This document shows, piece after piece, positions 11,444-35,559 of a stretch of DNA of 64,000 nucleotides (its first letter is position 1; every line of letters begins with the position of its first letter). The notes beneath the pieces were generated by a model. It was not told where the DNA came from and made no database searches. It saw only the letters and a list, made by a program, of their open reading frames with translations. Made by a program: the position numbers and the translations under genes. Source of the stretch: Epithemia pelagica (taxonomy: Eukaryota; Protista; Bacillariophyta); NCBI GenBank assembly GCA_946965045.2, contig OX337235.1, forward strand, positions 62,001 through 126,000. The letters are read 5' to 3'.

Positions 11444-13159
11444 CTACACGACTTCGAAAATTCGAGTCTCCCCTCTTCGAAAAGTCTGCCCTCTACGTCG
11501 ATACTGAGGTGCGCCCACCACCACTGTCGAGCCATCTCTGGAAACATCCGTAGTCCAACTAAAGAACAAGAAAGGGCAAGGGAGCCAAGTTAGAACGCAA
11601 AGAAGGGAAAACCATGTACTCAAATAGCATGATCATAGGCACGTACCCAAGCCATTCTCCTTCCGAACTTCCAATGACATGTTCCACAACTTCCCATTGC
11701 AATGTCTTATCATTTTTCTTGTACACGGATGCTCGTCCGGCTTCTTTTTTGGTTTTGCTGGGGGAATAAAAGGGTGTCCCCACTACCAAAAGATTAGCAG
11801 CATTGGAGAGACTCACGGAATGTACCAATATCGGCGATCCAAAGGCATCGTCATCCGGCAAGTCAACAATGCTGGCTTGAGCACTGTTGTAACAAAATAT
11901 GTCCACCTTTTGTATCAGACCAACGACCCGACAATCACCATTCATGTTCAGAGCAGTGACACTCGGAATTGACCAGAATTGTGTCCATTCCTCGTTCTGA
12001 TCGTCATAAGAGACGAACCGAGCCCTTTGATCTGGTCCCACAAGGACCATCCGATCACGTGTATCCGATATCTCAACGGTCCTGTCGTACGACAGGCTAT
12101 TGCTGGAGCGTTCAACAGGCGGCAGGACGAAATCGCGAGCATCATTTTCCCACCTTTTCCAACGGTCGTCCCAATGATAGGTTTGAACAATACCTTCCCA
12201 AAAGTGGTCAAACACAAGGATGTTACCGTCACCCGAAATATCTAACGAGTCGACTTCATACTGCAGCATGTCCGAGTCGATCTGGTCTTGCACTTCAAAC
12301 TCCAATTCTTGATTTAGATTGGACAGATCCGACACAATGTCAAACACAAAGACTTCGGTGCGGCTGTTGACGGCCAGTCGTGTACCATCGCTCGTCATGG
12401 CAATATGATGTCCAAATCAATCTCTATCCAAAATCGTTATGGGTGGAAAGAGAACTTTTTCTTCTTGATACTGACCCGTGCTTGTACGACGAAAAAATTG
12501 GACCATCCTTCCTCGGGAGGCTACCACAATGAACCCATTGGCCGAGATGGCAACCTGGTGGTAGTATCCCATAGACTCATCCGTTGCACCCAAAAGTTCA
12601 AAATCTCCCACGGATTCCAAGGAATCCACCTCATTGGAAACGGTTGGTTGGGGATCGAAGCTTCCTCCCGGTGTGTTGTCATCCTTGTCGTCGCCGCCAC
12701 CATCATTACGCACTATGGCGAAAACCACGGCAATAATGACAGCAGGCACAATAAGCCCGAGAAAGTTTTTCAGATCAAACCTAATCTGTTTGCGATTGTT
12801 GTTGCTCGTGGTGTTGGTGGTGTTGGTGGTGTTGCTGGAGTTGTTGTCGTTGTTGCTGCTGCTGTGATTGTCGTTATGGACGTAAGCAGAAGGAGGAACG
12901 GGAGGAGGGAGATCTTGTCCATTCTGGTGACCTCCTGCGGGTGGCGACGATTCTTCCACGTTGCTGCTAGGAGCATCGTTGTTGTCATTGTTGTTCTATA
13001 CCGGTGCCATGTTCCCATCATCTTCGTCGCCACAGTCGCTTGGTTCGTAGGGCGCGGTGGGGTTCAGAACAATCTCTGGGTCCACTACAAGCTCGGCTGG
13101 TGCTACTTCCAGCTCTTCGTCGTTGTCGTTGGTGTTCATGACCGGAACGGCATGCACCA
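11444..13159 (-). pseudogene. Beta-propeller gene copy 2, main part; interrupted at about codon 15 by the 18.4-kb transposon
   Basis: Paralog of 8061-9804 with the same intron position and final exon (stop 11444-11446). In-frame stops TAG at 12996-12998 and TGA at 12417-12419 (DWFG becomes D*FG). Confidence 0.88.
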
Positions 13160-13174
13160 CATCTAAGGAAGGAA
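13160..13174 (+). repeat. Left terminal inverted repeat CATCTAAGGAAGGAA
   Basis: Read directly; pairs with 31588-31602. Confidence 0.92.
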
Positions 13175-13260
13175 CGGTACGCCAGTTTATGGCGGTTTAA
13201 TTATCGATAAGAAAGCACCCCTAAGCGCATCCTACTAGAATCATCCGCGCGCAGGACACG

Positions 13261-13487
13261 CGCACACCTACAAGAACATGCGCACACCTACAAGAACATG
13301 CGCACACCTACAAGAACATGCGCATGGCCCTTCCTCACGTTATTACTAAAAATGTGCTTTCCAGAACCAGCAAGCGCATGACCCACATTTCACCAACTTC
13401 AACACCATGCACAGTCAAGAACCAATAGTCATCACATCCCTCCACCTTCATGCACAGTCAAGAACCAACAGTCATCACATACCCTCC
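13261..13487. repeat. Left subterminal tandem repeats: 20-bp unit x3 (cgcacacctacaagaacatg, 13261-13324) and about 43-bp unit x2 (catgcacagtcaagaaccaa..., from 13406 and 13449)
   Basis: Read directly. Confidence 0.88.
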
Positions 13488-13687
13488 TATGTATGCACTC
13501 ATCCTTGATTGTGTCACATCACCATCATGCGCATTACTCCAGCATCAAGTGCAAGCAAGTTGAACACAGTGCATTTAACTAACACCATGCACACACTCCC
13601 ACTAACAACCAGCGAATGAATGGAACACAATACATGTAGCTATATAGGAGTAGTATATGAAATGAAACCAATTGTCACTCTGATCAA

Positions 13688-15680
13688 TCACTGCCACGAC
13701 CGTTTTCGTGGCCTTTTAGAAGGCCTTGTCACAGCATCATCATCTGCATACCCCATTCGAGAGCGATATTGCCCATTGAGAAACATCATGAACCAGATAC
13801 CGCGGTCGCCTGCTCTGTCTTCACGAGCGATTTTCTCTTCCATATCCTCAAAATAGTCCATACCATCCTCATTCATACATCGACTTGAGTTCCAACTGCC
13901 TGAATATTTGAAGCGAGGATACCTTGCTGAGGATGTATCAATCATTTGATCAACACCATTTTCATTGTACCACCTTGGATTTAATTCAAATAGTTTCGCC
14001 TTAAAAGTGGTCTTGCCCATGTGAGTCCACACATCCCAGCAATCCACAAGGATGGTCAATATGAATGCCTCGTCACTTGAAGTGAATAACTTCAAGGCCT
14101 TTTCGCAATGTTCCTTTCCCTGCTGCTCAGTGTGGTCACCAAAATTGAAATCAATCACGGTTTTATGCATATTCTCACCATAGACACATGGACCAAACAA
14201 TTGCAAGAGATATGAATAGGCATAGTTGTCACACTTCTCTCCTCTCAATAACAGAAATTCTTCCAGGGTAGGCATTGGCCCAAAGTCTTCACAGTCGTTC
14301 AAAAGGCATGGATACCTCCGCTGGAAATTACTGTCACGCCATAGATCAAGACCCACATGTTCTAGATTCAGCAACAAATTATCTCACATCTCTTTATGAG
14401 AAGACGACATGATGAACCAACACATTCACTCTTCGATTGACACTTACTTATAAATGCTTTTCGCATGGAAGCCAGAACATTTGATCGTTTGCTTCGGAAC
14501 TTGTCAAGCATATAAGGTGAATGTTCAATCCACCACTCCTCTTGTTGTTTTGCATCCGTAATGCCTTTGCCTTTGAAATAGTGCTCAGTAAAATATGTTT
14601 TGCCATACTTCCCCCAAAGACCATTCGGATCTGCCTTAGTATCTTCGGACATGGAGAAATACTTGACATAACGCCATGCCACCTTCCGAACAAATGTATC
14701 AAAGAACTTCTCCGATACCACCTCAGGCTTTTTCTTCGGCTTTTGCTTCTTATTCTTGTCCTTTTCGACAGAACCTTTGTGTGTAGTGGATGTTACAATC
14801 GTACTTGTCGGGCAAGATGATTGATTATGGTGTACTGTTGTTGTCTGTGTTTCCTGTGCCAACTGATTTTGAATATCGTCTTGTAGAAGAGTTTCCATCG
14901 CCTGATCAGGCCCTGTTGTTAGCAAAGTAGATGATGAAGATGACGACATATCCGAAAGGGAAGAAACGTCGTTAGCAAAGGTATCACCTGATGCATTCAA
15001 CCCACAAACACCCCCGTCATTAGAGCCGTCTCACCGACAAATTGTCCTCCTCTATTTTGTGCATCTAACAACTTACTGACAAGTCCTCCAGCAGGAAAAT
15101 GTCTCTCATTAGGATCAAAATCATCTCCATCATACTCACTGGGTCCATTGCTCATATTCTGCAATGCTCGTTGCATTTCAGGTCCAGTGAGAATATTTAC
15201 ACTGACGTCGTCCTCCTCCATGTTATTAACTGCCGTGTTTGTTGGTTGCGCAAAACCAGATGATGGTTGTGTTCTCAGCCCACCCTGTTCATTATTGCTA
15301 TCATCTGCTGAAGTCACATCGGCTCCATCTCTTTCTGAATTTGTTGCCTGCTCCAAAAGATTACCACTCCCTTCCACAGTTGTGCCTTCTTGTGCTTGTG
15401 CTTGATCGTTGTTCATCGAGATCTGTTCCTCTTCTTCCTCGTCATCAGAACTATCTTCTTGGAGTACTAAACCTCCATTGGCTGCTGCAATAAGAGCATC
15501 TTTGTTTGTAATTGTCCCGTCCTTGTTAGGAAGATTCTCTTTATTTCTTGTTGCCACTGCTGTCAAGATGCTTCTTCGTTGTCGTTCAACCTCTTTCTGA
15601 TTACTTCCATAGTTTGCATTTCGGACTGCTAAGGGTCGACGCCTCGTTGGAGCTGCATTTCTGGTGGTGACTCCTGCCAT
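13688..15680 (-). CDS. Transposon accessory protein ORF-A (605 aa, 3 exons), function unknown
   Basis: Three track ORFs join through phase-compatible GTAAGT...AG introns at 14988-15076 (89 nt) and 14362-14447 (86 nt); exon total 1818 nt. C-terminal motifs SSDEAFILTILVDCWDVW and KYSGSW...EDGMDYF; basic tail. Confidence 0.8.
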
Positions 15681-16244
15681 CGTTTATCTTGGATGCTCCG
15701 TCTGATTTATGACAAGGATGTGAACAAGAGCAGGGTGAAAACAAGACCTCTGATGGACAACCATTCAAATTCAAACGCTGGAATGCTCCATGTTTGAATC
15801 ATAAACTCCGTGTTTCAACGATGGTTCTTTAGAGAACGTATGAAGATGAGCATATGTGGTTTCAAGTACATCATACTTGTCAGATGGAACATTGGTGCAT
15901 GGGTTTGAATGATTGTCATTTCCTTTCTAATGTCGACAGTGTCGGTATCCTCGGCATTGACACAGTATTTGAATTCCAATCGCTGCTATCACCGTTGGTA
16001 TCTAACCCGGCAGGCTGGATTGGATTAAGTAAATACACACGACCGTTTGAAAATATTATGATCCGTTCATGTACATAAGCGATTTTCAGTCGCTTTTATG
16101 CACCAACGTCGGCCGATCCACCCAATGCGGAGAAATTCTGATATATGCCACAAGATTGACCACCGATGTCTCAATTTGCAGAAATCGATTATAGAGCATT
16201 TTTCATTACAAACCAAAATCTAAAACCACCAGCATCGTACCATC

Positions 16245-19200
16245 ATGGGCCAGCGTCGTAAAGTAAAAAAGAAGTCGCGAAAGAGATGCTCAAATACAAG
16301 CCAACAAGAGGAGTCCTTCATATCCTTTCAAGTGTGTCGTTTCTGTCAATCACGTTTCGATGCAAGAGGAATCAGCCGTCACGAAACAGTTTGTGAATTG
16401 AAAATGAACACCCAAAGGAAATGGCCAAATGTTGGCGATGACAACAATGATTGTGCCAGTAATATGAATGCTGATCCAATGAATATTGATATCATGGACG
16501 ATGAAACCACTATTCCGCATGCTGACCCACCAAAAGCATACTATGTACCTGGTGATACAGATAATATTATTCTGCGCAACAGCAAGGAGTGCCCGGTTGA
16601 TTTTCCTGCGTTCCTCGATAGAGATGGGAAGCAATTGAAACTTCATAAACACGATGCAGCCTTGGTCTCACTTATGATGTTACTTCGGAGAGCTGGTTGC
16701 CCCAAATATTTGTACAATTCGATCCTGGCATGGTCGAGTGACACATACTCAAGATGCGGTCCTGGGTTCTTCCTGGACAACCATTCAAAGAGGAAAACGT
16801 TTATCAAAAAGTTTTCTACCAAAGGTTTCAATTATCCCAAGGCCAAATTTTTCCCGGTACCAATGGAATTCACCCAAAAACAGGGTGTGGTTGTACCAGA
16901 GAGTGAGAAATCAATAACAACACCAGTATTTGATTTGATCAGTCAACTACAGCGTGTATTACAAGATCCCGATGCAACCAAGAAAGAAAATACGATCCTC
17001 GATGATGACGATCCGTATCGTCCATATGTTCCAAACAAGCACATCCAAAATATACAAGACGGAGAAGTATTTCAGAAAACAGTGGAAAAATATAGAGATG
17101 ATCCAGATGCCTTCGTGGTTGGTCTTGTCTGTTATATGGACAAAACACATGCAACAGGGGATGGAAGATATACATCGGAGCCTGTTGTAATGGTGCCATC
17201 TTTTCTAACGGAAACACAAATGTGGAAAGCAAGGCGACAGATCATCCTTGGGACTATTACAGACATGGAAATCATCAGCGGCAAAACATATCCTCGATAA
17301 AGGGACTCCTTGCCGAAATTATCATGCTCAATTGACTAAGATCCTCGAAGGTCTTGTCAGTATCCAAAAACAGGAAGGTTTATGGATGAAACTACGTCTT
17401 CATGGGATTATCAAAGTTGTCCGTTTGATATTGCCAATGATTGTTGTCAAAGGAGACGGGAAGTCTCAGGATAACCTTGCAGGTCGGTATGCCTCGCATC
17501 ATCCAAGTGTTGGAAGACTATCATGGTGTTGCAACATTAAACCAAGGGATAGCAGATACCCATGGCATGAATGTTCTTATATCAATGCTGCAAGTACATA
17601 CAAAATGTGCTTGAATGCATTGGGTCTTAATGAAAATCGAGAAAAATTGACTGAACAGGATGTTGATTACCAAGAGAGAGACAATGATACATTTTCGACT
17701 TTGACTGTTCCTACCTGTTTGAGCACATCGCAAGTAAGTCAAGAAAATAGCAGAGATGGAGGGGTCAATACCCTTGTGTCAGCTGCAAAAACCCAATTGC
17801 ATGACATGGGACAATATGCAGTCGATCTTTGTTTTTCCAAGGTTTACCTGGGTGAAGGAACCAATTCTGAACATGGGATTTTCTCGGCCAGTAGTTGTGA
17901 TGTTCTTCATACATTGAAATCTGGGATAATGAGATACATCATGATTGACTTTTTCACGTTGATGACAAAAACTGAACGGGCCATGTTTGATTATGTCTAC
18001 AATTCAATCTTTCGGGCAAGTAGACAGACTGTATTCTCGTATTCATCGAAACTTGGATATCCCGGAACATCATTCTCGACCGGGATCAGTAACCTGTCAA
18101 AAGTAACTGCCAATGAGTGGGTTGGGATCATGTTTGCTTCAGCAGCTCTATGTGCCACTGCCAGAGGTCGCCTTATATTCGCGAAGAATATGGCAAAGAA
18201 ATGGAACAAGGTGGTTGCGGAATGGAAAAAACGACAAGCAAAGCAAACATCCAAAACCACCAACAAGACATGTCAAGCGGACTTGGATCAAGTGCAAGAG
18301 ACAAGTGAACCTATTGCTGACAATGAGGATGATACTCCACCAGATGAAGAGTACGAACGTACACGTCTTGATGATGATGATAGTGTTGACATTGATATCA
18401 CAGCTGAAACTGTTTTTGATGATGACCCAGTTGCTTACAGGTCTATCTGGGATGTTGACGAGCGGGAACCATACATAGACTTCCTGCATCTATTCGAGAC
18501 TCTTTTGTGTTTCAACAGCTGGATTCGTATGGATACATTCTGGGAAACAGACCCAGACTCACAAGAAGGACAAACAACAGCATCCAAGTCTCTCGAATCA
18601 GTGCGGATTTTGATGGATGGCATCAGGAGATATGCACCCAGGCTCGATAAAAAAGGCAAATTGATGTCCAACGGGTGGATGATACCAAAATTCCACAATC
18701 TCATACATATTATACAATAGATTCAGAATTTTGGACCAGCACGACTGCTTGATGTGGAGTCAGAGGAAAGTAATCATAAGGAAATTGTGAAATTGAATGC
18801 AAAAACGGTACAGAAACGTGGAAAAGGAATTTTTGAGTCGCAACTTGCAGAAAATATCTGGTGGATGCAAAGCTTGGAAATGCTGCAGGAAGCAACAGGT
18901 CTTGAAGAAGATCATGTCACCTTTCTCCAGGAAGGGAAGTCGCCTTATGAAATAAGGAGAAAAAAGGGATCCCAAAACCAACTCCCTACCACATCAACCT
19001 CGAATAGCCGTGGAACGGTCATAGTAGTATCCATGACCAGAGAAAAATGTTTGATTCCAGTACCTCACACGAACGTACATACTTCTGGTGATAATCAAGA
19101 CCAGTCATCAGATGAAATAGACAAGGATCTTCCGTCTCCATTGGGTATGTCGATTCAAGTTCCAGGCACGACCAGAAAAGAACAAGACGGATCAAACCGA

Positions 19201-20097
19201 AACCAGACGAGTAGTGTACACAGGCGATTGACAGCAGCACCACACGAGGAGGATGTGGTATCAGTGAATATCGAATTCCATTCCAAAACAAATCATGACA
19301 TGACATTGCCACAGTTTTGTAATCACTTCTTTCGATTACATTACAAACGCTTTTTTCATCATATAGACGGGATGAGTGATGATCCAACAAATGAGACTTC
19401 AACCACACTGGAATTGTTCGGGAGCACAGAACTTAAGTTCGAAGACCCCAGGATAGGAAATATACGGGCTCATCCGAATTATCAAAGCGAGGGGCCATGG
19501 AGAGATTGGGTGATGGCTAAAGTTCCAAAGAAAAAAAGGAAACCTCTTGATGAGGTATACAACCAACCTCTCGGAGAATTTGATACCATCCTATGTCAAA
19601 CGATATGCTTCATTCAAATACCCATTACTCGAACAGACCACATACAAATGCAACCATCACCGGTATGTCAACCTTCAACTTCACCCGAGATGACCCATGT
19701 CCTTCTCCGAACAACATATGTACGGAGTACAGCTGATATCGAGAAATCATCCGTTCTCTTTCAAAAATGGCGTAAGCGTTTTGACCTACATCGAATAGCT
19801 GAAATTGTCATGGTTCCACTCCGGAATATTGTTGAGGTTGTTGGTGTAGTGGATGAGAACCCAGAAATGATTCAAGACCGTGATTCTATCCCAACATATT
19901 TCCATTCTTCACTTGAAAAAGATTTACTCCAAGAAGACAGTCGTAATTTGAGAAACTTTAGTGACAATGTCTGGGCCGTACGCAACATCAAAGAATGGGC
20001 TTCCGAATTCAATGAAAGTGGCCGTGACAATCTCGAGAAACGCTGTAATGAAATGAAAGAAAGATTGAAACAATCCGTTAGCAATTCGACGTCATGA
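16245..20097 (+). pseudogene. Plavaka/CACTA(CMC)-like DDE transposase (about 1280 codons), disrupted
   Basis: N-terminal CxxC...H...C finger; CYMDKTH...EPVVM; RNYHAQLTKILEGL; VKGDGK...AGRY; WCCN; CDVLHTLKSG; PKFHNLIH...NFG...DVESEESNHK; HPNYQSEGPWRDWVM. Frameshift near 17268 and in-frame TAG at 18718-18720. Confidence 0.82.
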
Positions 20098-20292
20098 TCA
20101 TAATTTGCCTCTATGGGGGGTTGTCACATACCAGCACTCCCCTCCTAATCTCCCCCCCAACCGTACGCGAGCCGACCAATTCAACTCAGAGTGTCACACA
20201 CAAATTGGATGAAATAGTAGATACTTTCCATCGTTTTCCAAAAGTCATCCTCGGTCTTCAGTCAGTAAGGCTATTCTACTCCTCTTCAAACA

Positions 20293-21420
20293 ATGATCAA
20301 CCCATACAAATCGAGGAAGAAAACAGTTCCACCCTTGGTGGTCAAACCAAACTTTCCAGTCACAAAGATACCTCCATCTAATGAAGAAATGATGATCCAA
20401 CCATACGAGCTAGAGGAAATAGAGACCCCCATGGTCAAAACGCACTCTCCAACCCCGAAAACTTGCAACGGTGAACATGACAAGAAGCCACCGCCTGCGT
20501 CCAAATCAATAATCAAATGTCATCCACTTCCGTCTTCTAAGCTTGATACCAAGGAAGAAGAGGAGAAGAAACTTCCACCAATCAAGCGCCCATCGTATCA
20601 GTTGATCCCAAACCCATATAAGAAGAAGCTCAAGGTTGCCGATCCATCTACTATTCCAATCTTGCTATTACATGACTCTCCTCCAATGTGTAAACCAAGA
20701 GCAAACCGAGATAAGCTGCATCTCGAAGTTATTCGGTTCACTGAGCTTGTCAATAAAATCTATGGATCCAATGATGTTCCCCCAGAGCCAGTCTGTCCTT
20801 GGTGTTTTGTAACCGACAACCTTTCAACAGATCGTAGACTTACAGGAAAATGTTGGCATCGCTTCGGTAAATCTCTCTCATGTGCCGATTGTTGTTATGG
20901 TTGTGGAGTGCCCATGAACGGATGTGATTCAGGTGGGAATGAACGTTGTTGCACCGAAGCCCTGTATATCCATGATTCGATGAATATCACACGCGAAGAA
21001 TCAGACATAAACAAGGTTCCATTGGTGTGTAAGTCTTGCTTAAGGCCATGTAATTCTTATTCAGAATGCGTCTTCTCGCATGGTTGTTGGAACTCTTGCA
21101 ACAAGTAGTTCGTCTGGCGATTCTGTCATATTGCTGGACGGGCGTTGGTGTACTCACAATTGAAGCCCAATTGCAAAGGACCAGGCACGATTCCCAAACA
21201 TGCACAGGATATTATCAAAAACGCAACAGAGTTGATGTACAACGAACTGCGAGATCCGATGGAGTCTTCTCAGTACACATCTCCATTTTGTCATGTTCTT
21301 GACCAAGACTCCTGGTCTAAATGGCTTGTCTCCATGTCTTTCGGTCGATACTACAATTACATGCCGTTCTTCCGTCATTGTTACACAGCCTTGATGTCTT
21401 CATCGAAACCATTGTATTAA
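20293..21420 (+). pseudogene. Cys-rich cargo gene 1 (about 375 codons, one in-frame TAG)
   Basis: Pro/Lys-rich N-terminus, then CPWC...CYGC...CKSC. The frame continues past TAG 21106-21108 (NK*FVWRFC) to WSKWLVSM...NYMPFFRHCY, matching the paralog at 21482-22549. Confidence 0.7.
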
Positions 21421-21481
21421 ACAAACTCTCGACTTCTTCGAAAGGCAAACTGGGAACAGATAACAAGATTTATAATATATG

Positions 21482-22549
21482 TCAATGATCATTACCATCC
21501 ATATTTTCACGTTCCAACTCCGCCGTCTCAGCCATTCTTTCGAGACAATTACGGAAGCACCTGACAAAGAGTGGCATGTAGTTGCGAAAACCAGCTGTAG
21601 AATGAGGCAACGAAAGCAACCATACTGCCCATGTTTTATCAGATGCTCGGGCATAATCGTATGGGGCACAATCGTTATCATCAAAATAGAAACGGGATCG
21701 CAATTCCTCAAGCCAAACGCTGCGGACAATAGTAAACATTGGCCAGGTGATTTGACGGGGAAAGTTCACACCATCGTAAAATGATGTTATTTGAAAAGTA
21801 CGCGCCACAATATGGCGTATGAGCATACAGAACTGCCACACGAAGTGCTTGTTCTCAGATTCCACACAGACACTGCATGAATCCAAATCTGGTTGTGGAA
21901 TCCCAAAAGGTATTGAGCGTTCGGGAATTCGGAAACATTCCCTACACACCTGACAATGAAATGTTGGATGCCTGTGGCGGTGACATAAGTTACAACGCAT
22001 CAAAAAATTCTGCTGCCAGATAACTGAATAATCGAGATATGCCGCACGTGTTACCACTGTAGTATTTCCATGATTGCACTGGTGATGTGGTGTGGGACGA
22101 CCAAGGATAACACAGTATGGACAGAGTTTCTCACCTCTAAGCATTTCGTCCACCAACCGTTTGAATTCAGTCTGGATTTCATGACCGACACGCATCTCTT
22201 CTCTGAGTTGTTCTATGACTTGTGGTACATCTTCTTCTTCATTATCGTAATCAAAAAAGATCCTCCCAGCGTCCCTGAAACAAGGCCGATCATTCACTTC
22301 CAAGTTCCTGTCGTTGATCGCCCGCATTTCTCGTCGTCGTCTACGTTCCCGAACATAAAAATCTTCTTCCTCCGATTCTTCTTCCTCCGATTCATCTCCC
22401 GATTCATCCTCCGGTTGGTCCTCTGGATTGTCAGCCATTCTGTTTGCAGTCTCCTTCTCTTCGTTTTGCTGTGAATGCAAATACCTGTACTTGTTGCTTC
22501 TTCTTTGGATTTTTATGAAACCTCTGCTGTCATATGAACGAGAGTTCAA
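21482..22549 (-). CDS. Cys-rich cargo gene 2 (355 aa), paralog of 20293-21420
   Basis: Acidic N-terminus, CPYC...CNLC...CQVC...CSVC, then NKHFVWQFC and WAVWLLSL...NYMPLFVRCF. Confidence 0.75.
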   Translation of the reverse strand: MNSRSYDSRGFIKIQRRSNKYRYLHSQQNEEKETANRMADNPEDQPEDESGDESEEEESEEEDFYVRERRRRREMRAINDRNLEVNDRPCFRDAGRIFFDYDNEEEDVPQVIEQLREEMRVGHEIQTEFKRLVDEMLRGEKLCPYCVILGRPTPHHQCNHGNTTVVTRAAYLDYSVIWQQNFLMRCNLCHRHRHPTFHCQVCRECFRIPERSIPFGIPQPDLDSCSVCVESENKHFVWQFCMLIRHIVARTFQITSFYDGVNFPRQITWPMFTIVRSVWLEELRSRFYFDDNDCAPYDYARASDKTWAVWLLSLPHSTAGFRNYMPLFVRCFRNCLERMAETAELERENMDGNDH

Positions 22550-22689
22550 CTGGAAATAGATCCACGGATAACCGATCGGTCGCGTTTGTGTACAGAAATC
22601 GTCACACTATACTATTCACTGTGAGTATTACCACATACTGTGAGGATAAGTGTAATCATTCCCAACATGGTCGCGTTTCACTCGCTGGG

Positions 22690-22975
22690 CTGACCTATCG
22701 GTGTGGCTTTGCAAAATTCCATGGACATGGAACAATGACATGCTTCTAGAACTCGAATGGCTCCAAATTTTCGTATAGACCATTTGGGTATCATTTGCAT
22801 GGACGGTAAAGGCTCTGAATTTGTCTATCATCAACCAAAAGACTTGCAATAGACCCTACCGGTGTGGTGTTGCCGTCGTCCCAAAATTCTATGGACATGG
22901 AGCAAAGACATTCTTCTAGAAATCGAATGGCTCCAAATTTTCTAGAGACCCTTGGGGTATCATAGGCATTGATTG
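22690..22975. repeat. Degenerate tandem duplication (about 165-bp period) inside the transposon
   Basis: cctatcggtgtgg...atggacatggaacaatgacatgcttctagaactcgaatggctccaaatttt recurs as cctaccggtgtgg...atggacatggagcaaagacattcttctagaaatcgaatggctccaaatttt. Confidence 0.8.
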
Positions 22976-23030
22976 ATGGTAGGTAGTGGTTTTGCTGATA
23001 GGTGGGCATGGTCTTGTATATTAGAAATCT

Positions 23031-26000
23031 CTATTCGTCACTAGATTTCTGGCCCGACGCCAAGCCTCCAATTTCATGAGAATTGTCATCATCGTTTTGT
23101 GTTACGGTAGCACTCAAAGATCTTGCATTTGTGCTAAAAAACCAACCAATCGTATGATTTCCCACATTCTTGTCTTTCGGTGGTATGGAGTGTGTATGGA
23201 CAGATGTTCCATGTCTGATGATTCTCCCGTCCCATGCGATCGCAATGCCATGGAATAACCGGATACAAAGCCCATGATAAGTCTTGTCCTTATGCTTTAT
23301 AAGGACATTGGGAAGGACGAAATACCAATTGTTGGTGCTGCCCGGGTTGGTTTCTGTCCAGATTGTAAAGGACACTGATGCATCATGAATATCATAGTGG
23401 CTTGCATTCATCAAATCGCAACTCAAAATGATGGATGATGACACACCCCTTTCGTTTCCTCCCAATTCGTTTGGGACATCCAAACCGAAGTTTGTTTCCA
23501 GGTGTCTGAAAGCCGATAACACACCAGGGAATTTCCTCTCACAGAATCGCCGAACACCTCCACAGATTTTTGGCAATATATTCATCATGTTTGGAGATAT
23601 TTTGAAAAGTTTGTCAGAAAAGAATGTACTTCTGCCACCCGTTTTTGTGCACACACCAACAGATGTCATGGTCCCCATATCACCATGGTTACACCTTGCA
23701 TTGGCTGATCTCTCTAGTGTACCGCTCTGCGCGAAGTGACATGACCTCTTGTGTAACAATGAAAGTAGGTTTTTGTCATTTTGCTGAAGTGTTGTCACTT
23801 TGACATGGCTGATGGTTTCGTTTTTACCCGCGTACCCACGTGTCCGAACAATGAATGTTGTATCTTCTCCGGTATCCCTTACATCAAACAGGAGCGGACG
23901 GACCGAAGTATCAGGCGGAGGGGACAGGTTTCTATACAATGCTCCATGGACGTACTTTCGGCATCCAGTCTTGTTAGCACTGGCTTTATTCAGCAGTGTT
24001 TCACGATACCACACTCTAAGAGAATGTTGGTCATTTGGTGTCATTTTTGGTCTGGACTTTTCACTTGTGTAATGATCAGGGGCCCAAAGTGGAGAACCAC
24101 TTTCAACATCAGACGCTTGGTAGCATTCATGGACAACTCTCTTTGCACTTTGTGTCCAATCAATACACCAACACTTGACAACCTTTTTGAGGAATGCCCC
24201 ACCACTTGGTTGGCCGTCGGAATGTCGTAAGCGCAGCCAGGATATAGGTAGTGCTACCAAAGATGAAGTGCATTCCGATGTTGCATACCCAGTATTCATT
24301 ATCATTGCCGAAGTATAAAAAATACCGGCCAAAGGGATGATAACGATCACGTCATGGAAAATATGGTCCATACAATCATCACAGTTTTTCTTGGATGTGC
24401 GACAATGGAAGATTGTATCGTCAAACGCAGACCACACGGTTTTGGGGTATTTCCGATGTCCCTTATGTCGTTGACAGCGATTCAGTACACATTCTACCAA
24501 GAAGGCACATGGAGACCGGGTTGTTAAGAACTTCGGGTCACATTCTGTCACATGAAGCTTGTTGTCTTCGAAACAACAATGGCTTGCTGGATCTTCCGTC
24601 ACCTCACCAACCATGTCTTTCATTTGTTCGTATATGTTAGGTAATTTTCCCATGATTGTCTGGAGGTCTGTTGGTGTGATGTCGTAGTCTTTCAGAACCT
24701 TTGTATAGCAGATGCCGAACATTCTCCGATCATCATTGCTACTGAGACAGAGTGATAGTAAGTCGCGTAGTCTTTTTGCTACCTTGTCCATGTCAGGAAT
24801 TCCAAAAAAACACATTTCTGTATGATCGGATTCATTTGGTTTGGAGAATTTTGTCGTCAAATGGCTAGGTTTCTCAGCCTGTCGTCTCTTATACTTCTTC
24901 ATCGTTTCATGTGTTAGTGTCAACTTCGATAGGCCCTCTTGTCGTCGTTGCTTGTTCGTGGGTAGTCCCCTGGATGAACCAATGGTCTTACATTCTTTCC
25001 TTTTCCTTTCCGGTGAAGTATTCTGTTCGTCAGTATCGTCATGATTACCGTGTATTGGAGACTTGTGAATCTCCTTCGTACCTCGTTCGTCTTGTATGCG
25101 CTGATCCGTTTGTGTTGTCGTGTTGATGCTACTTCCCTTGTTATGGTCGTTTTTTGTCATTTGGTCATCGTTGTTCTTGTTGCTACCTTTTTGTTTGTCT
25201 GTACTATCCTTTCCTTCTTTGGTTTGTGTCGCATCATCTTGGTTGACACTGTCATTGTGACAGCTAGACGGATTATCACTGTCAGGTGTGTTGTTGGCAT
25301 TCTTAGACCCGTTCTCTCCAGAATTTCCGTGTTGTTCGTAAGCAACAATCTCTTGCTTGCCACATTCCTTGCCCTTTTGTTTGTCTGTAGAACCGTTGCC
25401 ATCTCTGCTTTGTATCTCTTCTCCTTGTCCACATTCATCTTGGTGACTGGAGGTTGCTTTCTGACCGCTCTGTCTGTTCCGATCATCCCTCTCCTGATTG
25501 TCCTTGGAATTCCAACCAAGTTTGGATAGGCCATCCTGCCCTCCACGACTCGCTGTAGTGTGATGAATGTCCTTTTCTCTCTCTCTACGAGGTGATTGAT
25601 TTAGTTGACTATTACCTCTATCAGTTGAGGGACGGTTAGGCTCTCTCTGACGGGTACGCCTAGAATGATCGTTGTGTCCAGGATGACTGTCTCTAAGTGA
25701 CAAATGGTGCCTGGAATGTTCGTTGTATCCAGGGAATCTCTCCCAATCCATCGGATCCATCGGATGTCGATTAGACCATTGATTGTGGCTATCTCTATAT
25801 ACCGAATGGTGCCTTGTATGTTCTCTCGAATGTTCGTTGTATCCAGAGAATCTCCTCCAATCCATCGAATGTCGATTAGACAATTGATTTTGATTATCAT
25901 GTCTTCTTTTTCTATCCCAGTAAGTGTTTTCCATGATTTGATCTCTTCTCCCTCTAGACTCGTCTTGGTGGTTATCATGGTATCCATGTTGGTCTTGTCG

Positions 26001-28309
26001 TTCAATGACTCCTCTTCTAGTTTGTTGGTTATCTTGATCGAAATGTGAATGACGAGACCCATGATAATCCGATGTATTAGATCCTCTCGATCCTGGATGA
26101 TCATCATTGAATCGATTCTGTCCATGCTTACAATACACTGGCCTGTCATGTTCAGGTAGCGAACCCCACTCATTTGTTCTGGGGCTTCGAGTTGTCGACA
26201 GGACGTTGTTCTGATTCCGTCCTCCCCACAGCCCATGTGGATTCTCTCTCTTGTCCTTGGTTCTTTCGTTATCATGTTGGGTTTGCTCTGTTCTATGTCT
26301 TTCTTCAGGCAGCTCACTCCGGTTACCCCAATTCGCAGGCATTGCAACGGAACGTGATGAGTTATTTCCTCCCCATTGCTGGTATTTAGGCTTCTCACCC
26401 TCTGGTGACTGATAGATTGCTTTGTGTTCAGAAGGATGAGTATATGTTCTTTGAACAGAACGTGTCATAGGACAGAAGTACAATAGACTTTGAATATCCT
26501 GGCTGCACACCATACATGTGTTGTGGCCCCGCTGCATCCAATCTCCAACACATTCCCGACAAAATGTATGTCTACAAAGAAACAGTTCGCAATCCACTTT
26601 TCTGGTCATACAAATCGAACAAACCTCGGGCTTGTATTTTGTCTCAACTCCTCTTTGTTCTAGTGTTGATGGCTTGTTACTCACGGGTGATTTTTTTGAT
26701 GATTCTTCAGGGTGTCCCTCAATCGTAGTTGTAGTGTCTTTGATTGTTTTCCTATGTCCCTCTTCAGGGAATCCCTCGCTCATAGTTGTAGTGTCTTCCG
26801 CTGTTTTCTTGTGTCCCTCTATCTTCTCCGCACCAAACATGTGGATGTTACTCTTGATCTTTTGTCCACACTGGGGACACCATACATTATGATACTTGAA
26901 CCGTATTCGTAAGCAATTTCCGTGAACCAGATGTCCACATGGGATGAGGGTACAGACTTCGCTGTCTGTATCTGTTTTCAATGCCCTGTTACAGCATACA
27001 CAAGAATCTGGACAATATACAACGGTCGGTAGCAATCGATTTATATCTCTCTTGGAAAGTTTGGAGTCAAGTAACACCTCCTTGGGTTCTAATCCCACCC
27101 TCGGGCACGGTATGAACAATATGTCACCATCCGTAGTCCACGTCTCTGAACACCCACCATCAGATAGATCGACGTTCTCCTGGTATTCGTATTTATCGGT
27201 ACCACGTGAAAACCCCACTTCAACAGGATCGTCGTCGCTGTTGCCATTGAAATTGTCAGGTCCCAACACCAAAGGAGAAATCGAATTGCCTTCAACAGCA
27301 TGCTCTAGTCCTCTCGAAAATTCATTATTGTACCGTATTTGATTACTCGAAAAACAATTGGATATCGTCATACTCTTGTCTATCTGACCTTCTTTCCGAC
27401 CCGGGTTTGGTCGACTACTCATTATGTTTCCAAGCATTCTGATCACAATAGCTTGTGGCATTGGCTTTGGAGTATCCTTCTTAGGTTCTGGCATTTTCAC
27501 AATGCGATATCGCCACTTGTTACATTCCTTGTTTGTATCATCTTCTTCCACTAATGATGGGTCATAACATAGACTGACAGGCAGGGCACCTTTTGACGTA
27601 TTGACCAGGTCCCATTTCCGTAGTACATGACGCGTCGTTCCTTCCCAGTATTGGTCTGATCGATTATGTATTGGTTCGTAGATATGAAGTATCTTTTTGT
27701 CGATTTCGAAAGCCAATAAAGCTGGGTCGCTGACATCAGTTGCTGTTGTCAAGGCAATGATCGCCAATATCAGTGTGTTCGGATCCTGTTGTCTCCATGA
27801 TGACATAGGAATTTTCTTAGGAAATGGGTTCCTGTTTGCTTCATCAAATGTTACTTTGTCAACATATACTAGGTTCTGATGGTTGTGATGGACCATCAAT
27901 TTCAAACAAGTATAGAAAGACTCAATCGGCATGCCCGTCCTTGAAGTGTTGTAGCAAAGATCTCTCCGACGATGTCTATGTGGGATATGCAAAACACGCG
28001 TTGTAGGGTCCTGGTCATTCATCAACCCACTGTAAGACATGCATAGTGTGCACCTAAATAATGTCTTGATTTCGACATGCGTGTTGTCCTTCCCCATACT
28101 CTTAGCATACTGGGTTGCTAGCTTCATGGCCGACTTGATGTTCTCGTTGTTTCTGTTAGTTTGTTTTTCCGCGAACTTGTCCAAGTAACCGTCACCAATG
28201 TTGTCGATTGATTCATTCGAGTCCCATGAGTCTTTTCTTCTCTTCTGGTTTACTATAGGATCAAGAACGTGTGGAATTTCAATGAAAGGCTGTGGTACCA
28301 CACCATCAC
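23031..28309 (-). CDS. Large cargo protein: RING-H2 + RING-HC + low-complexity linker + C-terminal TET/JBP-like 2OG-Fe(II) dioxygenase domain
   Basis: Uninterrupted 1756-codon ORF. RING motifs CVCC...CGHLVHGNC...CPQC and CSIC...CRHTFCREC...CMVC. C-terminus GDMGTMTSVG, NASHYDIHD (HxD; His codon 23397-23399), YFVLPN, AWDGRIIRHGTS (distal His 23211-23213). Confidence 0.8.
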
Positions 28310-28330
28310 CTGTCTCCTCAATTCCCTTGT

Positions 28331-29548
28331 TTATGGAAGCACAACGTCTCTAAGACAAAGAGACCAATCATTTTTGAGATTGTCTAATCCTTCTCGATTC
28401 TTGGCAAGTCGCTCGAACATCTTACCTCGTTGTCTGCGGTTTTTATTGTCGTCGCTTATAATCTTCCTGACCTCTTCCACACGGTCTGATTTGAGGGCAA
28501 CTTGGTTCGACGTTGTAATGGAAGTTGGTAGTACTTGATCCTTTTTCTCGTCAGTAGGATCATTACCAGCGACGACCTTCTGTCTCTTTTTTGCCGGCGA
28601 GTCTATACTCCGACGTTGCACGGCAATTTCTTTCGATTTCCTGGCAGACAGTACCTCTTGTTTTTCTATATAATGCAGTAGATCGTAGAACATACCGCCA
28701 TCGTCTCCGTTTCTTCCATATTGTACCAAAGAATCTCTTTCTTCAAGGTACATCTTGAACCATGTGTCAGGCATCGTATACAACAGTGCTTTCTCCATTT
28801 GGATATTGGAAATCACGTCCATGTTCTCGTCCGATGTCGATTCTGAGATGAAACGGTGTATGGCCACCATATGTTCGATAACCCATGCGATTTTACCAAC
28901 AGGTACGAGACGCGGTTTCCTGTAAAGGGAGGAATCATCTAGAAGGTATCGTTTCAATGCTTCTCCAATCCCACCGATCCCCTTGCGTGTCTTCTTAGAG
29001 ACTAAGCCATGAGAGGAAAGAAATCTGATAATGGTTTGTCTCAGATTCTCAGCACCGTCTATCACTGTTGTCCCAAATGCCTGATTCCAAATATTGGAAA
29101 CAGGACTGTAGAGAGTCTTTTTGAACAACAGTCGAGCAACCATTGGAGTCAACTTGTCATCATCATCCATCTCGTTCTTAATTCTTGTGAAACAGAAAAC
29201 GGAGTGACAGATGATATCTTGGAATGCAGGCGAATAACAGATTGGTAGGAATATCTTCACATAATGGCCGTCATGTGGTACCTCCACTGTTGTCCATTTT
29301 CCTGATTTGTCTTGGAAAACACTTTCATACCAATTGAGGACACTTTCGTATGTAATGGGCATAATACCGGTGTAGTGAGATTCCTCGCTTGTGTGTGTTC
29401 GAAGTGTATGATTGGTACCAGAAACAGTCATAGTCGACACGTCCTTTCTTTTGTTTCGCACTTCATCATTCATTGAAGAAGGGTCACCAGGATTCTTGGC
29501 GGTCGGTGGTTTTTTGTAGCGAGGGCCCTTGATGCGGTTGCCCGCCAT
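28331..29548 (-). CDS. 405-aa cargo ORF, possibly exon 1 of the RING-TET gene
   Basis: Co-oriented and about 30 bp upstream of an ORF whose track start is GTG, not ATG. A donor G|GTAAGA at 28425 and acceptor AG at 28310-28311 would join in frame (2133 aa), but that acceptor is purine-rich and weak. Confidence 0.6.
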   Translation of the reverse strand: MAGNRIKGPRYKKPPTAKNPGDPSSMNDEVRNKRKDVSTMTVSGTNHTLRTHTSEESHYTGIMPITYESVLNWYESVFQDKSGKWTTVEVPHDGHYVKIFLPICYSPAFQDIICHSVFCFTRIKNEMDDDDKLTPMVARLLFKKTLYSPVSNIWNQAFGTTVIDGAENLRQTIIRFLSSHGLVSKKTRKGIGGIGEALKRYLLDDSSLYRKPRLVPVGKIAWVIEHMVAIHRFISESTSDENMDVISNIQMEKALLYTMPDTWFKMYLEERDSLVQYGRNGDDGGMFYDLLHYIEKQEVLSARKSKEIAVQRRSIDSPAKKRQKVVAGNDPTDEKKDQVLPTSITTSNQVALKSDRVEEVRKIISDDNKNRRQRGKMFERLAKNREGLDNLKNDWSLCLRDVVLP

Positions 29549-29569
29549 TTTGTACTTGTCGCGATGCGC

Positions 29570-30905
29570 TTTTTGTGTAGCGTCTTTGTTTCAACAACAA
29601 CAACAACAAGGGTAGTCGAGGAAGCGCTTTAATTGTAGCGTCTTTGAGACAACCTTGTGTACTTGTCTAAACAGTAAAAAGTGTGCGCTGAATTGTGTAG
29701 CGTCTTTGGTTTGGTCCTGAACTCTGGTGGTAACAAAACAACAACCAAATCGAAGGAATACACTACGACGCGCTTTATGTGTAGCGTCTTGTTCGTTGTG
29801 ATCCAACAATCGGTGCCAGAATTTGCTACTCCAAAACCAGGGGTTGGTTGGTTGTCCAAGCAATCTCGCGACAAGAATAGAACAGAAGCAACTGGCTACC
29901 ACCGTGTCACACTGCTTGCTTTGGGTCTGTTCTATTCAAGTCCGAGTATCACGAGGACAGGAGGGTTCTTGATAAACAATCTAACAGATAGCCCGAAACC
30001 GCTTCAATTGTAATAGCGTGATTGGAGTGAAGGACAGAGCTGGGTGAAACAAGCAACAATCAGACAGATGCCCCAAGCCGCTTTAATTGTAGCGTGGTGA
30101 TTGGAATGGCAGAGCTGCAAGATAGTGCAAGTTTCAAAGATAGGACAAATGTCGACAATATTTCGAATGCTCTGGTGGTCGTTCTTCTTCTTGGGTTCCT
30201 CTTCTTCTTGTTTTCCTGTTGTAGCGGTTTTGGAGTGAAGGTCGTGGTTGAAAGGAAGCAAGCAACAATCAGACAGATGCCCCAAGCCGCTTTAGTTGTA
30301 GCGTGATTGGAATGGCAGAGCTGCAAGATAGTGCAAGTGTCAATGTCTCGAATGCTCTGGCCGTGCTTGAGTTCCTCTTCCTCTTCTTCTGGTGCAGCGG
30401 TTTTGGAGTGAAGTGTTGTAGCGGTTTTGGAGTGAAGGTCGTGGTTGAAAGGAAGCAAGCAACAATCAGACAGATGCCCCAAGCCGCTTTAATTGTAGCG
30501 TGATTGGAATGGCAGAGCTGCAAGATAGTGCAAGTGTCAATGTCTCGAATGCTCTGGCCGTGCTTGAGTTCCTCTTCCTCTTCTTCTGGTGCAGCGGTTT
30601 TGGAGTGAAGGTGGCTGAAGAGGAAGCAAGCAACAAAAAGGTGGCTGAAAAGGAACCAAGCAACAATCAGACAGATGCCCCAAGCCGCTTTAATTGTAGC
30701 GTGATTGGAATGGCAGAGCTGTTAGGTTGATGAAAGAAGTTGGATAGGTGAAAGGATTGAAAAGGGAATCTCGGCAGAGAGAAAGCAAGCAACAAAAAGG
30801 TGGCTGAAAAGGAACCAAGAAACAATCAGACAGATGCCCCAAGCCGCTTTAATTGTAGCGTGATTGGAATGGCAGAGCTGTTAGGTTGATGAAAGAAGCT
30901 GGATA
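29570..30905. repeat. Right subterminal repeat arrays: gtagcgtctt x4 (29570-29790) and five copies of a core aatcagacagatgccccaagccgcttta.ttgtagcgtgattggaatggcagagctg with variable linkers (about 30055-30890)
   Basis: Core copies begin near 30058, 30268, 30464, 30665 and 30823; read directly. Confidence 0.9.
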
Positions 30906-31587
30906 GATAATGGGATTGAACAGGGGAATCTCGATAGCGTTGGGTGATCGATTGTTGTTGTTGCTGCTGCTGTTGTTGTTGTTTGTTGTGGTGTGTTGGG
31001 TGGAGGTGGAGGGAGATGAATGAGCATCGATTCTGGTGGTCGTTGATTGTTGAATGACTAGTATGCTAAGTTGTTCGGTTTTGTTCGATGGATCAGAGTG
31101 TCGAGTTGGTAATCCCCGCGGTTTGGGTGATTGGGAAGGAGGATCCATCTGAGACATTCTTTGGGACATCCATGTGCGTCAGTCTTTCTGGCAGCTGCTG
31201 TGTGATGTGGTGGGAGTGGAAATTCGTGATTCAAAGGTGAGGGGACAGACGCTTGCGCATGAGGGTTGCGTCATGCGCGTCTCGGGGGGGTCGAGCGCGC
31301 CAGATAGTTGTAGTGCGCATTATCGGAGTGTGGCGCGCGTTATTCGTGGTTTGATCGCGGGCTTGTGCGCATTAAAATTGTGGCATGCGCGTGATAGTCA
31401 GCTCGATCTCTAGAACTAGCTAGAGAAATGTGCATTGTTAGACCTAGATTTGCAGATTTAGTTGGGAAAGCAGGATTATAGTTAAAAACTGCGCATATAA
31501 AAATAAACTGCGCATAAAAAATTTTAATTTGGCGAATTTTTTCTAGAAATTCGCTTTTGGGGGTGGAAATCAAGCGCCGGGGCCCAT

Positions 31588-31602
31588 TTCCCTCCTTAGA
31601 TG
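31588..31602 (-). repeat. Right terminal inverted repeat (reverse complement CATCTAAGGAGGGAA)
   Basis: ttccctccttagatg read directly. Confidence 0.92.
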
Positions 31603-31644
31603 CACCTCATCGTTGCTGGTGTTGGTGTTGTTCGTGAGCAACAT
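31603..31644 (-). pseudogene. Detached 5' end of beta-propeller gene copy 2 (MLLTNNTNTSNDEV)
   Basis: Matches copy 1 MTMLLTNNNNNSNDEVVHAV; continues in frame at 13159 once the element and one CA are removed. Confidence 0.9.
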
Positions 31645-35275: not shown

Positions 35276-35559
35276 CTTCGTAAAGCAATTCTGAATTCGT
35301 GGCTTTTGACGATTGTCAACACCACACACTTCGTTTGGAACAACCAAAACAGGTGTGTCGTGGTGGAAGAGTGGCAAGATCTTGGTTCTTTTTTTGGTTG
35401 AACAGGAAATGATCCATGGGAATGATGGGATGGCATCGATGGGGCCGAGGAAACAAGATCTTTTGTGAGATGACGTACGTGCTTTGTCTATCGCACCAAG
35501 GTCGCGTTTCACTAGCGCTGGAGTTCACATATAAGCTCTGGAGGACAAACCAAAACTAG

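Follow-up and report, generated by a model that had tools for sequence, protein, structure and literature searches.

A 64-kb window of the Epithemia pelagica genome (GenBank OX337235.1, positions 62,001-126,000; the window is the whole stretch analysed, and all coordinates below are its own unless a copy is named) contains an 18.4-kb element at 13160-31602. This element is a real, recently multiplied, multi-copy cut-and-paste (class II) DNA transposon bounded by terminal inverted repeats (TIRs). Most probably it is a young, approximately 18-kb member of the Plavaka lineage, non-autonomous in the window copy, carrying a gene, here called R, whose TET/JBP-fold dioxygenase most probably modifies methylated DNA bases. 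Why does this matter? A DNA-base-modifying enzyme borne by a transposon would be a direct counter-move to methylation-based genome defence. So far fungi have provided the documented cases, and red algae a looser version that involves 2-oxoglutarate (2OG) oxygenases. The element described here would extend the phenomenon to a stramenopile-type alga and add a RING-RING-TET/JBP architecture to it.

Ends, copies and insertion site

The boundaries of the element in the window, including its target-site duplications (TSDs), are as follows.

13158-13159, no strand: left TSD, CA, 2 bp
13160-13174, plus strand: left TIR, CATCTAAGGAAGGAA; homology to the sister copies begins precisely at 13160
31588-31602, minus strand: right TIR, CATCTAAGGAGGGAA in the minus-strand reading, the same sequence in all copies
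31603-31604, no strand: right TSD, CA, 2 bp

An earlier note on this DNA, made from the sequence alone, had described exact 15-bp TIRs within a CA duplication. The duplication is present on both sides, and the length and ends of the TIRs hold; the repeats are not exact, since left and right agree at 14 of 15 positions. Within the window the TIR 15-mer has three matches at two or fewer mismatches, against 0.15 expected by chance. The third match (two mismatches) lies at 20375, within the coding region of accessory gene C1 and at the same place in all copies. We treat this internal 15-mer as a coincidence.

Sister copies come from the ENA assembly ERZ21939226, in which the window's proteins are recorded on contig ctg1297l, and whole copies were retrieved via the centrally located gene C2. 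Complete copies are 17.0-18.5 kb long, are 98.6-99.4% identical to one another, and have their first 20 and last 20 nucleotides in common. Clustering at 90% identity gives 36 members for gene N, 25 for A1 (a piece of gene A), 21 for C2 and 53 member sequences for the intact transposase. Comparison of ends across copies bears out the shared termini and 2-bp duplications that the earlier note had supposed: all six complete copies have perfect 2-bp TSDs, which differ in sequence at each insertion and would arise by chance with a probability of about (1/16)^6.

Window copy: CA
Copy L007: GA
Copy L008: TA
Copy L010: CT
Copy L011: TG
Copy L012: GT

Because no empty allele was found (a search with the left-flank gene returned the window's own contig only), the evidence for insertion is this set of duplications and not an empty site. 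Joining the flanks minus one CA yields a short open frame of 72 amino acids (aa) across the junction. The insertion site lies in a (GTT/GTG)n-rich stretch (12405-13166, plus strand; 12417-12959, minus strand) that, to either side of the element, gives a low-complexity frame rich in N, T and D when read on the minus strand. The element may have inserted in a low-complexity coding or untranslated region of a host gene.

A transposase probably of the Plavaka lineage

The transposase gene is placed as follows.

16245-20097, plus strand: transposase gene (T), inactivated here; the intact version has 1285 aa

Relative to the family consensus, the window transposase is thrown out of frame by a 5-bp deletion after 17268 and stopped by a CAG>TAG change at 18718-18720. 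Because of this deletion and nonsense codon the window copy, though structurally complete, is non-autonomous. Intact 1285-aa open reading frames (ORFs) exist in sister copies (L008, 12345-16199, minus strand; L013, 3380-7237, minus strand), so no repair of the window sequence is needed for study of the protein. Its motifs are an N-terminal CxxC...HxxxC zinc finger, D299 within YMDKTH, GDGKSQD at 402-408, H817-x3-H821 (HNLIH), and a glutamate at about 834-839 (FGP..DVESEESNHK), some 15 residues after the H(3)H. Relatives conserve the finger, YxDKTH, GD(A/G)KSQD, D(V/I)(L/M)HTLKxG, H817-x3-H821 and FGP..DxExxESNHK, and even at 27-38% identity they still have the D, D, H(3)H and E motifs. The DDE transposase first read from the window is upheld. 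The order of its motifs, H(3)H just before E, is the layout of transposases of the CMCT clade (CACTA/EnSpm-Mirage-Chapaev-Transib), in which H(3-4)H lies shortly ahead of the catalytic E (Kojima 2025, PMC12730594).

To which superfamily does this transposase belong? In the same assembly, word-based searches turned up paralogues that are 40-68% identical. Profile searches added a 1325-aa relative at 38% identity on an ENA metagenome contig (P0240), another from JGI (P0241), and a fragment labelled Attheya sp. in EukProt (P0249) that is 27% identical and matches Pfam Plavaka at E 0.001. Pfam Plavaka is weakly matched by 5 of 22 family members and is the sole recurrent transposon family among them. 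The L016 transposase, which adjoins a dioxygenase homolog, scores 24.1 bits (E 2.5e-5). Two transposases on JGI contigs, L025 and L028, are matched by our family hidden Markov model (HMM) at E 9e-36 and 7e-38 and lie above the gathering score of Pfam Plavaka (PF18759), at 31.9 and 29.7 bits versus 26.3. An hhalign comparison of the family alignment with the L025 transposase gave a probability of 99.7% and E 9e-26 over 576 columns, spanning D1 and D2 as well as the Cys motif, H(3)H and E. Sequence searches of the PDB with the transposase profile returned nothing or only noise.

The ends of the element point the same way. PlavakaB elements have 2-3-bp TSDs and termini CATCA..TGATG, and CMCT elements in general have CA..TG (PMC12730594). 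The termini here, CATCT..AGATG, agree with PlavakaB at 4 of 5 positions and satisfy the general rule; judged by sequence, they and the 2-bp TSD would fit the PlavakaB lineage. The terminal 9-mer CATCTAAGG, the first nine nucleotides of the left TIR, recurs in the diverged L002 and L015, some 3 kb upstream of the transposase. In L015, a metagenome contig (ERZ27315315) with a 38% identical transposase, it stands at 38-46, about 3.1 kb upstream of that gene.

Might the superfamily of the element be a different one, whether KDZ or classical EnSpm/CACTA or something new, its likeness to Plavaka being just that of a generic RNase-H fold? Some of our results weigh on that side. The element's own transposase, in pieces or as the intact 1285 aa, has no Pfam match even at E <= 1, which makes the case for Plavaka membership one of transitive homology. 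In this family the CMCT motif C(2)C is degenerate, the Cys pair being CC here and CxC in relatives, with CRIC at the aligned place in L025. The AlphaFold2 model is poor, with a predicted local distance difference test score (pLDDT) of 46.7 from a 22-sequence alignment. RAG1, Transib and RAGL account for nearly all Foldseek matches of this model, at E >= 0.011; this is a weak hint in favor of Plavaka, which has been grouped with RAG1/Transib in the CMCT clade (Kojima, PMC12730594).

On the other side, KDZ membership is ruled out by the 2-bp TSD, as KDZ elements have 7-8 bp (PMC12730594), and neither the element nor any of the 22 family members has a KDZ match in Pfam. Classical CACTA/EnSpm, which needs CAC..GTG termini and a 3-bp TSD, is ruled out by the CATCT termini and the 2-bp TSD; EnSpm profiles (Pfam Transposase_21 and related) match neither the element's transposase nor the 22 members. 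A generic fold would also have to account for the 576-column alignment with a Pfam-validated Plavaka transposase. We therefore consider another superfamily very improbable, and the Plavaka lineage is supported for the transposase by transitive sequence homology. Of the proposed Plavaka/CACTA-like identity, the Plavaka half is supported by the hhalign match and in keeping with the TSD and termini, and the CACTA half holds only in the wide sense of the CMCT clade, although subterminal repeat arrays, a classical CACTA/EnSpm trait, are present. The HMM check that had been suggested for the transposase gave no direct Pfam match; the relatives L025 and L028 are the ones that exceed the Plavaka gathering score.

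Gene R encodes a predicted RING-RING-dioxygenase

The features of R are listed here; residue numbers are those of the 1756-aa ORF.

23031-28127, minus strand: accessory gene R, with 1698 aa counted from the first ATG; the reading frame stays open as far as 28301
26862-27014, minus strand: RING finger 1, RING-H2-like, residues 430-480
26499-26621, minus strand: RING finger 2, C3HC4, residues 561-601
23070-24797, minus strand: TET/JBP-fold Fe(II)/2OG dioxygenase domain, by predicted fold and conserved triad
23382-23408, minus strand: HxD motif NASHYDIHD, H1635 and D1637
23202-23234, minus strand: distal His motif WDGRIIRHGTS, H1697

R consists of an N-terminal region, the two RING fingers, a long low-complexity linker rich in H, R, D and N, and the C-terminal TET/JBP-fold dioxygenase. 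RING2 matches Pfam zf-C3HC4_3 at 31 bits against a cutoff of 27, and the RNF8 RING in the PDB at E 4.7e-6. RING1 is the weaker of the two, appearing as a second stretch matched by Pfam zf-RING_2 and matching the AMFR and RCHY1 RINGs in the PDB at E 0.01-0.1. Relative to the consensus, the window copy of R has a 12-bp in-frame deletion at 27537 and is still open. An intact ORF of 1698-1702 aa is found in the window, L008 and L009; L010 and L012 likewise have a complete dioxygenase domain.

An exhaustive HMMER search of 1.84 billion representatives clustered at 50% identified 659 relatives of the dioxygenase; all 10 of the clusters looked up consist of environmental sequences. With a 105-sequence alignment, AlphaFold2 produced a model of the domain with pLDDT 89 and a predicted template modelling score of 0.91. 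Foldseek against the PDB placed TET2, CMD1, CcTET and NgTET1 in all of the top 25 positions (E 2e-10 to 3e-5). TET2-DNA complexes are the top five (E 2e-10 to 3e-9), CMD1 is second-best, and FTO comes after the TET group. The HxD...H triad is nearly invariant in the 105 homologs and invariant in an 8-sequence core alignment that includes diverged subfamilies; NA(S/T)HxDxxD and WDGRxIRHGT(S/T) are kept in distant homologs and diverged element subfamilies alike. Distant homologs of one cluster (P0065, with P0234-P0237; ENA contigs of 10-12 kb) are 1719-1756 aa long, share the overall size and layout of R, and have the domain at the extreme C-terminus; P0065 itself has no Pfam RING match. The fungal PE type of dioxygenase was considered and ruled out, as PE has HxE and R has HxD.

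Several observations argue against a TET/JBP assignment. Pfam Tet_JBP (PF12851) does not match the window dioxygenase and matches just one of 52 homologs, at E 0.0055. Searched singly or as a profile, the C-terminal 607 residues of R matched no sequence in the PDB, and they match no Pfam family. Moderate TM-scores, 0.4-0.57 on the target, were obtained against TET structures, and structural alignments with TET/JBP enzymes show about 10-13% sequence identity. The family alignment shows no conserved Arg beyond the distal His, so the co-substrate of R could differ from 2OG. The predicted fold and the intact HxD...H triad nevertheless support a TET/JBP-like C-terminus. The two RING fingers of the cargo protein described in the earlier note are confirmed, and its dioxygenase is upheld as TET/JBP-like by fold and triad; the Tet_JBP profile proposed as a check found nothing, and the structural search found TET/JBP enzymes in its top 25.

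The dioxygenase travels with the transposase

Are the accessory genes merely host genes that were passively captured (Pack-type cargo) and play no role in the element's life cycle? Parts of the cargo are indeed lost in some copies. L005/L007 lacks the dioxygenase catalytic core (HxD...H), the rest of R remaining open as a 1458-aa ORF, and L006 lacks approximately 9 kb that take in C1 and C2 together with the greater part of both T and R. No dioxygenase was detected in the L002 and L003 subfamilies within the DNA retrieved. Giant algal transposons, moreover, often carry genes of unknown function (PMC12477816).

These losses, which count against a role for R, must be set against its persistence. 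The L001/L004 subfamily, with transposases only 40-55% identical, keeps the gene order A(-) T(+) C1(+) C2(-) R(-), and the dioxygenase domain is detected in both L001 and L004. Its catalytic residues are invariant, and, as noted above, R or its dioxygenase domain is complete in five of the copies named. In four unrelated environmental contigs (L016 from ENA; L021, L025 and L028 from JGI), a dioxygenase gene of the same family is adjacent to, and convergent with, a transposase gene of the same Plavaka family. The JGI contigs, 16 in total, were found with the 8-sequence core alignment; three show the linkage and most others are too short to tell. We regard passive capture as quite improbable. 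Because it recurs in unrelated environmental eukaryote contigs, the association between dioxygenase and Plavaka transposase is a recurring family trait and not a one-off capture.

A more far-reaching proposal is that the dioxygenase represents a large unannotated TET/JBP-fold clade, Plavaka-borne in marine and freshwater protists and here fused to RING fingers as a dual effector that would act against silencing through both a DNA mark and ubiquitin, with a chemistry that might differ (CMD1-like or thymine-directed). We offer this tentatively and think it rather unlikely in its full form. The divergent clade may supply new 5-methylcytosine (5mC)- or T-modifying enzymes for sequencing chemistry.

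A methylation footprint and a proposed mechanism

What might R act on? In an alignment of six copies (window, L007, L008, L010, L011 and L012), transitions occur at 0.066 per CpG site and 0.013 per other C/G site, an approximately 5-fold excess (Fisher p = 6e-26). Transversion rates are flat, the same at CpG as at other C/G sites. The CpG observed/expected ratio is 0.77 in the element versus 0.85 and 0.94 in the flanks. An excess of transitions at CpG is the classical footprint of 5mC deamination. The copies therefore are, or were, CpG-methylated, which makes a cargo enzyme directed at 5mC plausible. The same decay signature means that any protection has been partial at best, a point that tells against an effective eraser.

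We envisage the following sequence of events. The intact 1285-aa DDE transposase would bind the ATGCGCA heptamers of the subterminal regions (described below) and the CATCTAAGG termini. It would then excise the element and reinsert it with a 2-bp staggered cut, a step whose duplications are seen and whose chemistry we infer. By analogy with TET, NgTET1 and CcTET, R most probably oxidises 5mC on DNA. This activity would weaken silencing of the element by CpG methylation, and the RING fingers may add an activity directed at chromatin or protein.

The chemistry of R might also be a different one. The dioxygenase could hydroxylate thymine in the manner of JBP (5-hydroxymethyluracil (5hmU)/base-J-type), glycerylate 5mC with ascorbate as CMD1 does, or act on RNA or protein, so that the cargo marks or regulates and does not erase 5mC. 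The rank of CMD1 among the structural matches speaks for this, as do the appearance of FTO, an RNA/DNA demethylase, behind the TET group, the want of a conserved Arg after the distal His, and the failure of Pfam Tet_JBP to match the domain. Other chemistries have been left open for divergent fungal types (Kojima, PMC12730594), and a dinoflagellate TET/JBP enzyme has been published that reportedly makes 5hmU and silences transposable elements (PMC11572971). Opposed to it are the five TET2-DNA complexes at the head of the structural matches, the 5mC substrate common to the TET/JBP-family enzymes that fill all of the top 25, and the CpG decay, which indicates 5mC on the copies. We judge a non-erasing chemistry possible but doubtful, and continue to favor a dioxygenase that modifies methylated bases.

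The family should make a good experimental system. Its copies are about 99% identical, at least one (L008) has all genes intact, others lack the dioxygenase core only, and they bear a CpG-deamination signature. These features allow a direct test of the TET-like cargo against the methylation and activity of its own copies.

Subterminal and internal repeats

The repeat regions of the element are these.

13175-13660, plus strand: left subterminal region, with two tandem arrays and four ATGCGCA heptamers
29563-30933, no strand: repeat field upstream of N/R, with 33-nt and 160-200-bp units
31250-31587, minus strand: right subterminal region, where the left-end motif recurs inverted as five TGCGCAT heptamers

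The subterminal repeat arrays reported in the earlier note are real. At the left end they comprise a 20-bp unit repeated 3.5 times (13256-13324) and a 43-bp unit repeated 2.2 times (13406-13498). ATGCGCA is restricted to the ends: the first 500 bp hold four copies, the last 500 bp hold five in inverted orientation, and the 17.4-kb interior holds none. The left subterminal repeats and heptamers are probably transposase-binding sites. The repeat field upstream of N/R contains a 33-nt unit repeated three times (29563-29799) and a tandem unit of 160-200 bp repeated five times (30046-30933). All units contain the motif GC(C)GCTTTAATTGTAGCG, of which there are eight copies; it could act as a promoter element or form an array of binding sites.

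Other accessory genes

Besides the transposase and R, the element carries four accessory genes, which together with R bear out the four to five cargo genes first counted.

13688-15680, minus strand: accessory gene A, three consecutive ORFs in different frames (13688-14377, 14368-15000, 14997-15680)
20293-21108, plus strand: accessory gene C1, Cys-rich, 271 aa here, truncated by TAC>TAG at 21106-21108
21482-22438, minus strand: accessory gene C2, Cys/His-rich, 318 aa from ATG
28331-29548, minus strand: accessory gene N, 405 aa here, 388 aa in most copies

All copies share the three-ORF layout of gene A, as does L015, the relative with the 38% identical transposase (412-2331, on the strand opposite to the transposase), and for this reason A is probably a spliced gene with the ORFs as exons. 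C1 is a long ATG-initiated ORF of 375 aa in L007, L008, L010 and L012 and has 313 aa in L011; it is conserved in L001, L003 and L004. C2 shows weak similarity in L001 and L003. The window's N is longer than that of most copies because a 2-bp deletion at 28444 alters its C-terminus; N may be an upstream exon of R. In L008 all genes are intact (T 1285 aa, C1 375, C2 318, R 1702 and N 368).

Pfam searches of all window ORFs detected no known domain in A, C1, C2 or N, the RING in R being the sole match, and no ParB, DNA methylase or SET domain among the element proteins. Sequence searches of the PDB with N and C1 returned only noise. Rfam had no match in the window.

Variant copies

L005 and L007 are one copy (L007, 1843-19284), 98.7% identical and lacking window positions 22846-23770. 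L006 (7205-16660) is a deletion derivative, about 90% identical, with the same left end and without window positions 17653-26783; on the right it stops about 100 bp short of the TIR, with unrelated sequence beyond. L009 (element part 626-20957) has two tandem transposase ORFs of 1334 and 1157 aa, which points to a second copy nested in the first or to a duplication within the element; the retrieved DNA does not reach its left end. In L002, an 860-aa gene with VWA_2 and alpha-kinase domains (18104-20686, plus strand) is located about 5 kb downstream of a diverged transposase. Alpha-kinase genes are regular cargo of fungal TET-carrying IS3EU transposons (Kojima 2025, PMC12730594).

Surroundings in the window

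To the right of the element lie several apparent host genes and a retrotransposon.

33488-35512, minus strand: TPR protein, apparent host gene
40351-41694, plus strand: Kelch-repeat protein, apparent host gene
44523-45995, minus strand: adenylate/guanylate cyclase domain protein, apparent host gene
55622-57028, minus strand: subtilase with PPC domain, apparent host gene
58835-63074, minus strand: Copia-type long terminal repeat retrotransposon, two overlapping ORFs with RVT_2, retroviral SH3-like and gag-pre-integrase domains

RVT_2 elements also flank other copies of the transposon (L002, L003 and L011).

Comparison with known systems

How new is this element? The earlier note suggested that no such element had been described in diatoms. 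In the literature searched we found no report of a TET-carrying transposon from a diatom or other stramenopile and no earlier report of a RING-TET/JBP fusion; published fungal and red-algal elements reduce the novelty.

Plavaka elements were reportedly first named by Iyer et al. in 2014. The closest counterparts are fungal: TET-carrying DNA transposons are documented in fungi, those of PlavakaB in the Agaricales Agaricus bisporus and Gymnopus confluens (PMC12730594). Like fungal PlavakaB TET+ elements, ours combines a DDE transposase, here of probable Plavaka lineage, a 2-(3)-bp TSD and a TET/JBP-type dioxygenase cargo; the termini of both start with CATC, and escape from methylation-based silencing is the presumed role in both. 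It differs in its non-fungal host, in the HxD of R where the PE type of PlavakaB has HxE, in the fusion of the dioxygenase to two RINGs (about 1700 aa), and in its four further accessory genes. Its transposase is also too divergent for Pfam, with a degenerate C(2)C.

Giant Plavaka elements of red algae are the second point of reference. Those of Bostrychia moritziana, 17.4-19.1 kb long, carry PAG1-3, among them one 2OG oxygenase flanked by tandem repeats, and giant Plavaka elements are reported in Chondrus crispus too (bioRxiv 10.1101/2025.02.11.637652). Size class, probable lineage and the presence of several accessory genes, including a putative 2OG-dependent oxygenase with tandem arrays beside it, are common to both; the repeat field upstream of N/R recalls the tandem repeats beside the oxygenase gene PAG3. 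The same idea, that the element modifies its own chromatin or DNA, has been proposed for both. In contrast to the red-algal elements, whose PAG2 is a DNA methylase with SET, ours has no ParB, methylase or SET match, and its oxygenase, set against PAG3 by description only, is TET/JBP-like by predicted fold and RING-fused.

Among stramenopiles, the brown alga Ectocarpus has giant EnSpm and KDZ transposons with accessory genes (PMC12477816). Compared by description, these too are giant (>10 kb), multi-copy DNA transposons with accessory genes, which in Ectocarpus are transcribed. Pseudogenisation and mobilisation in trans are frequent among their transposases, and the window transposase is likewise broken. 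They differ from our element in belonging to EnSpm/KDZ and in having no reported TET/JBP cargo.

With human TET2, Naegleria NgTET1, Coprinopsis CcTET and Chlamydomonas CMD1, R shares a predicted double-stranded beta-helix fold and the HxD...H triad. Unlike the solved TET/JBP enzymes, its domain is larger (about 575 aa), has no Pfam Tet_JBP match and follows a new RING-RING N-terminal architecture. In Arabidopsis, VANDAL (Mutator-like) elements encode the anti-silencing protein VANC, which lowers methylation of their own copies. VANDAL/VANC is thus a functional analogue, a DNA transposon encoding its own factor against DNA methylation of its own copies. Unlike R, VANC is a sequence-specific DNA-binding protein and not an enzyme of the TET/JBP kind, and its transposon superfamily is unrelated to ours.

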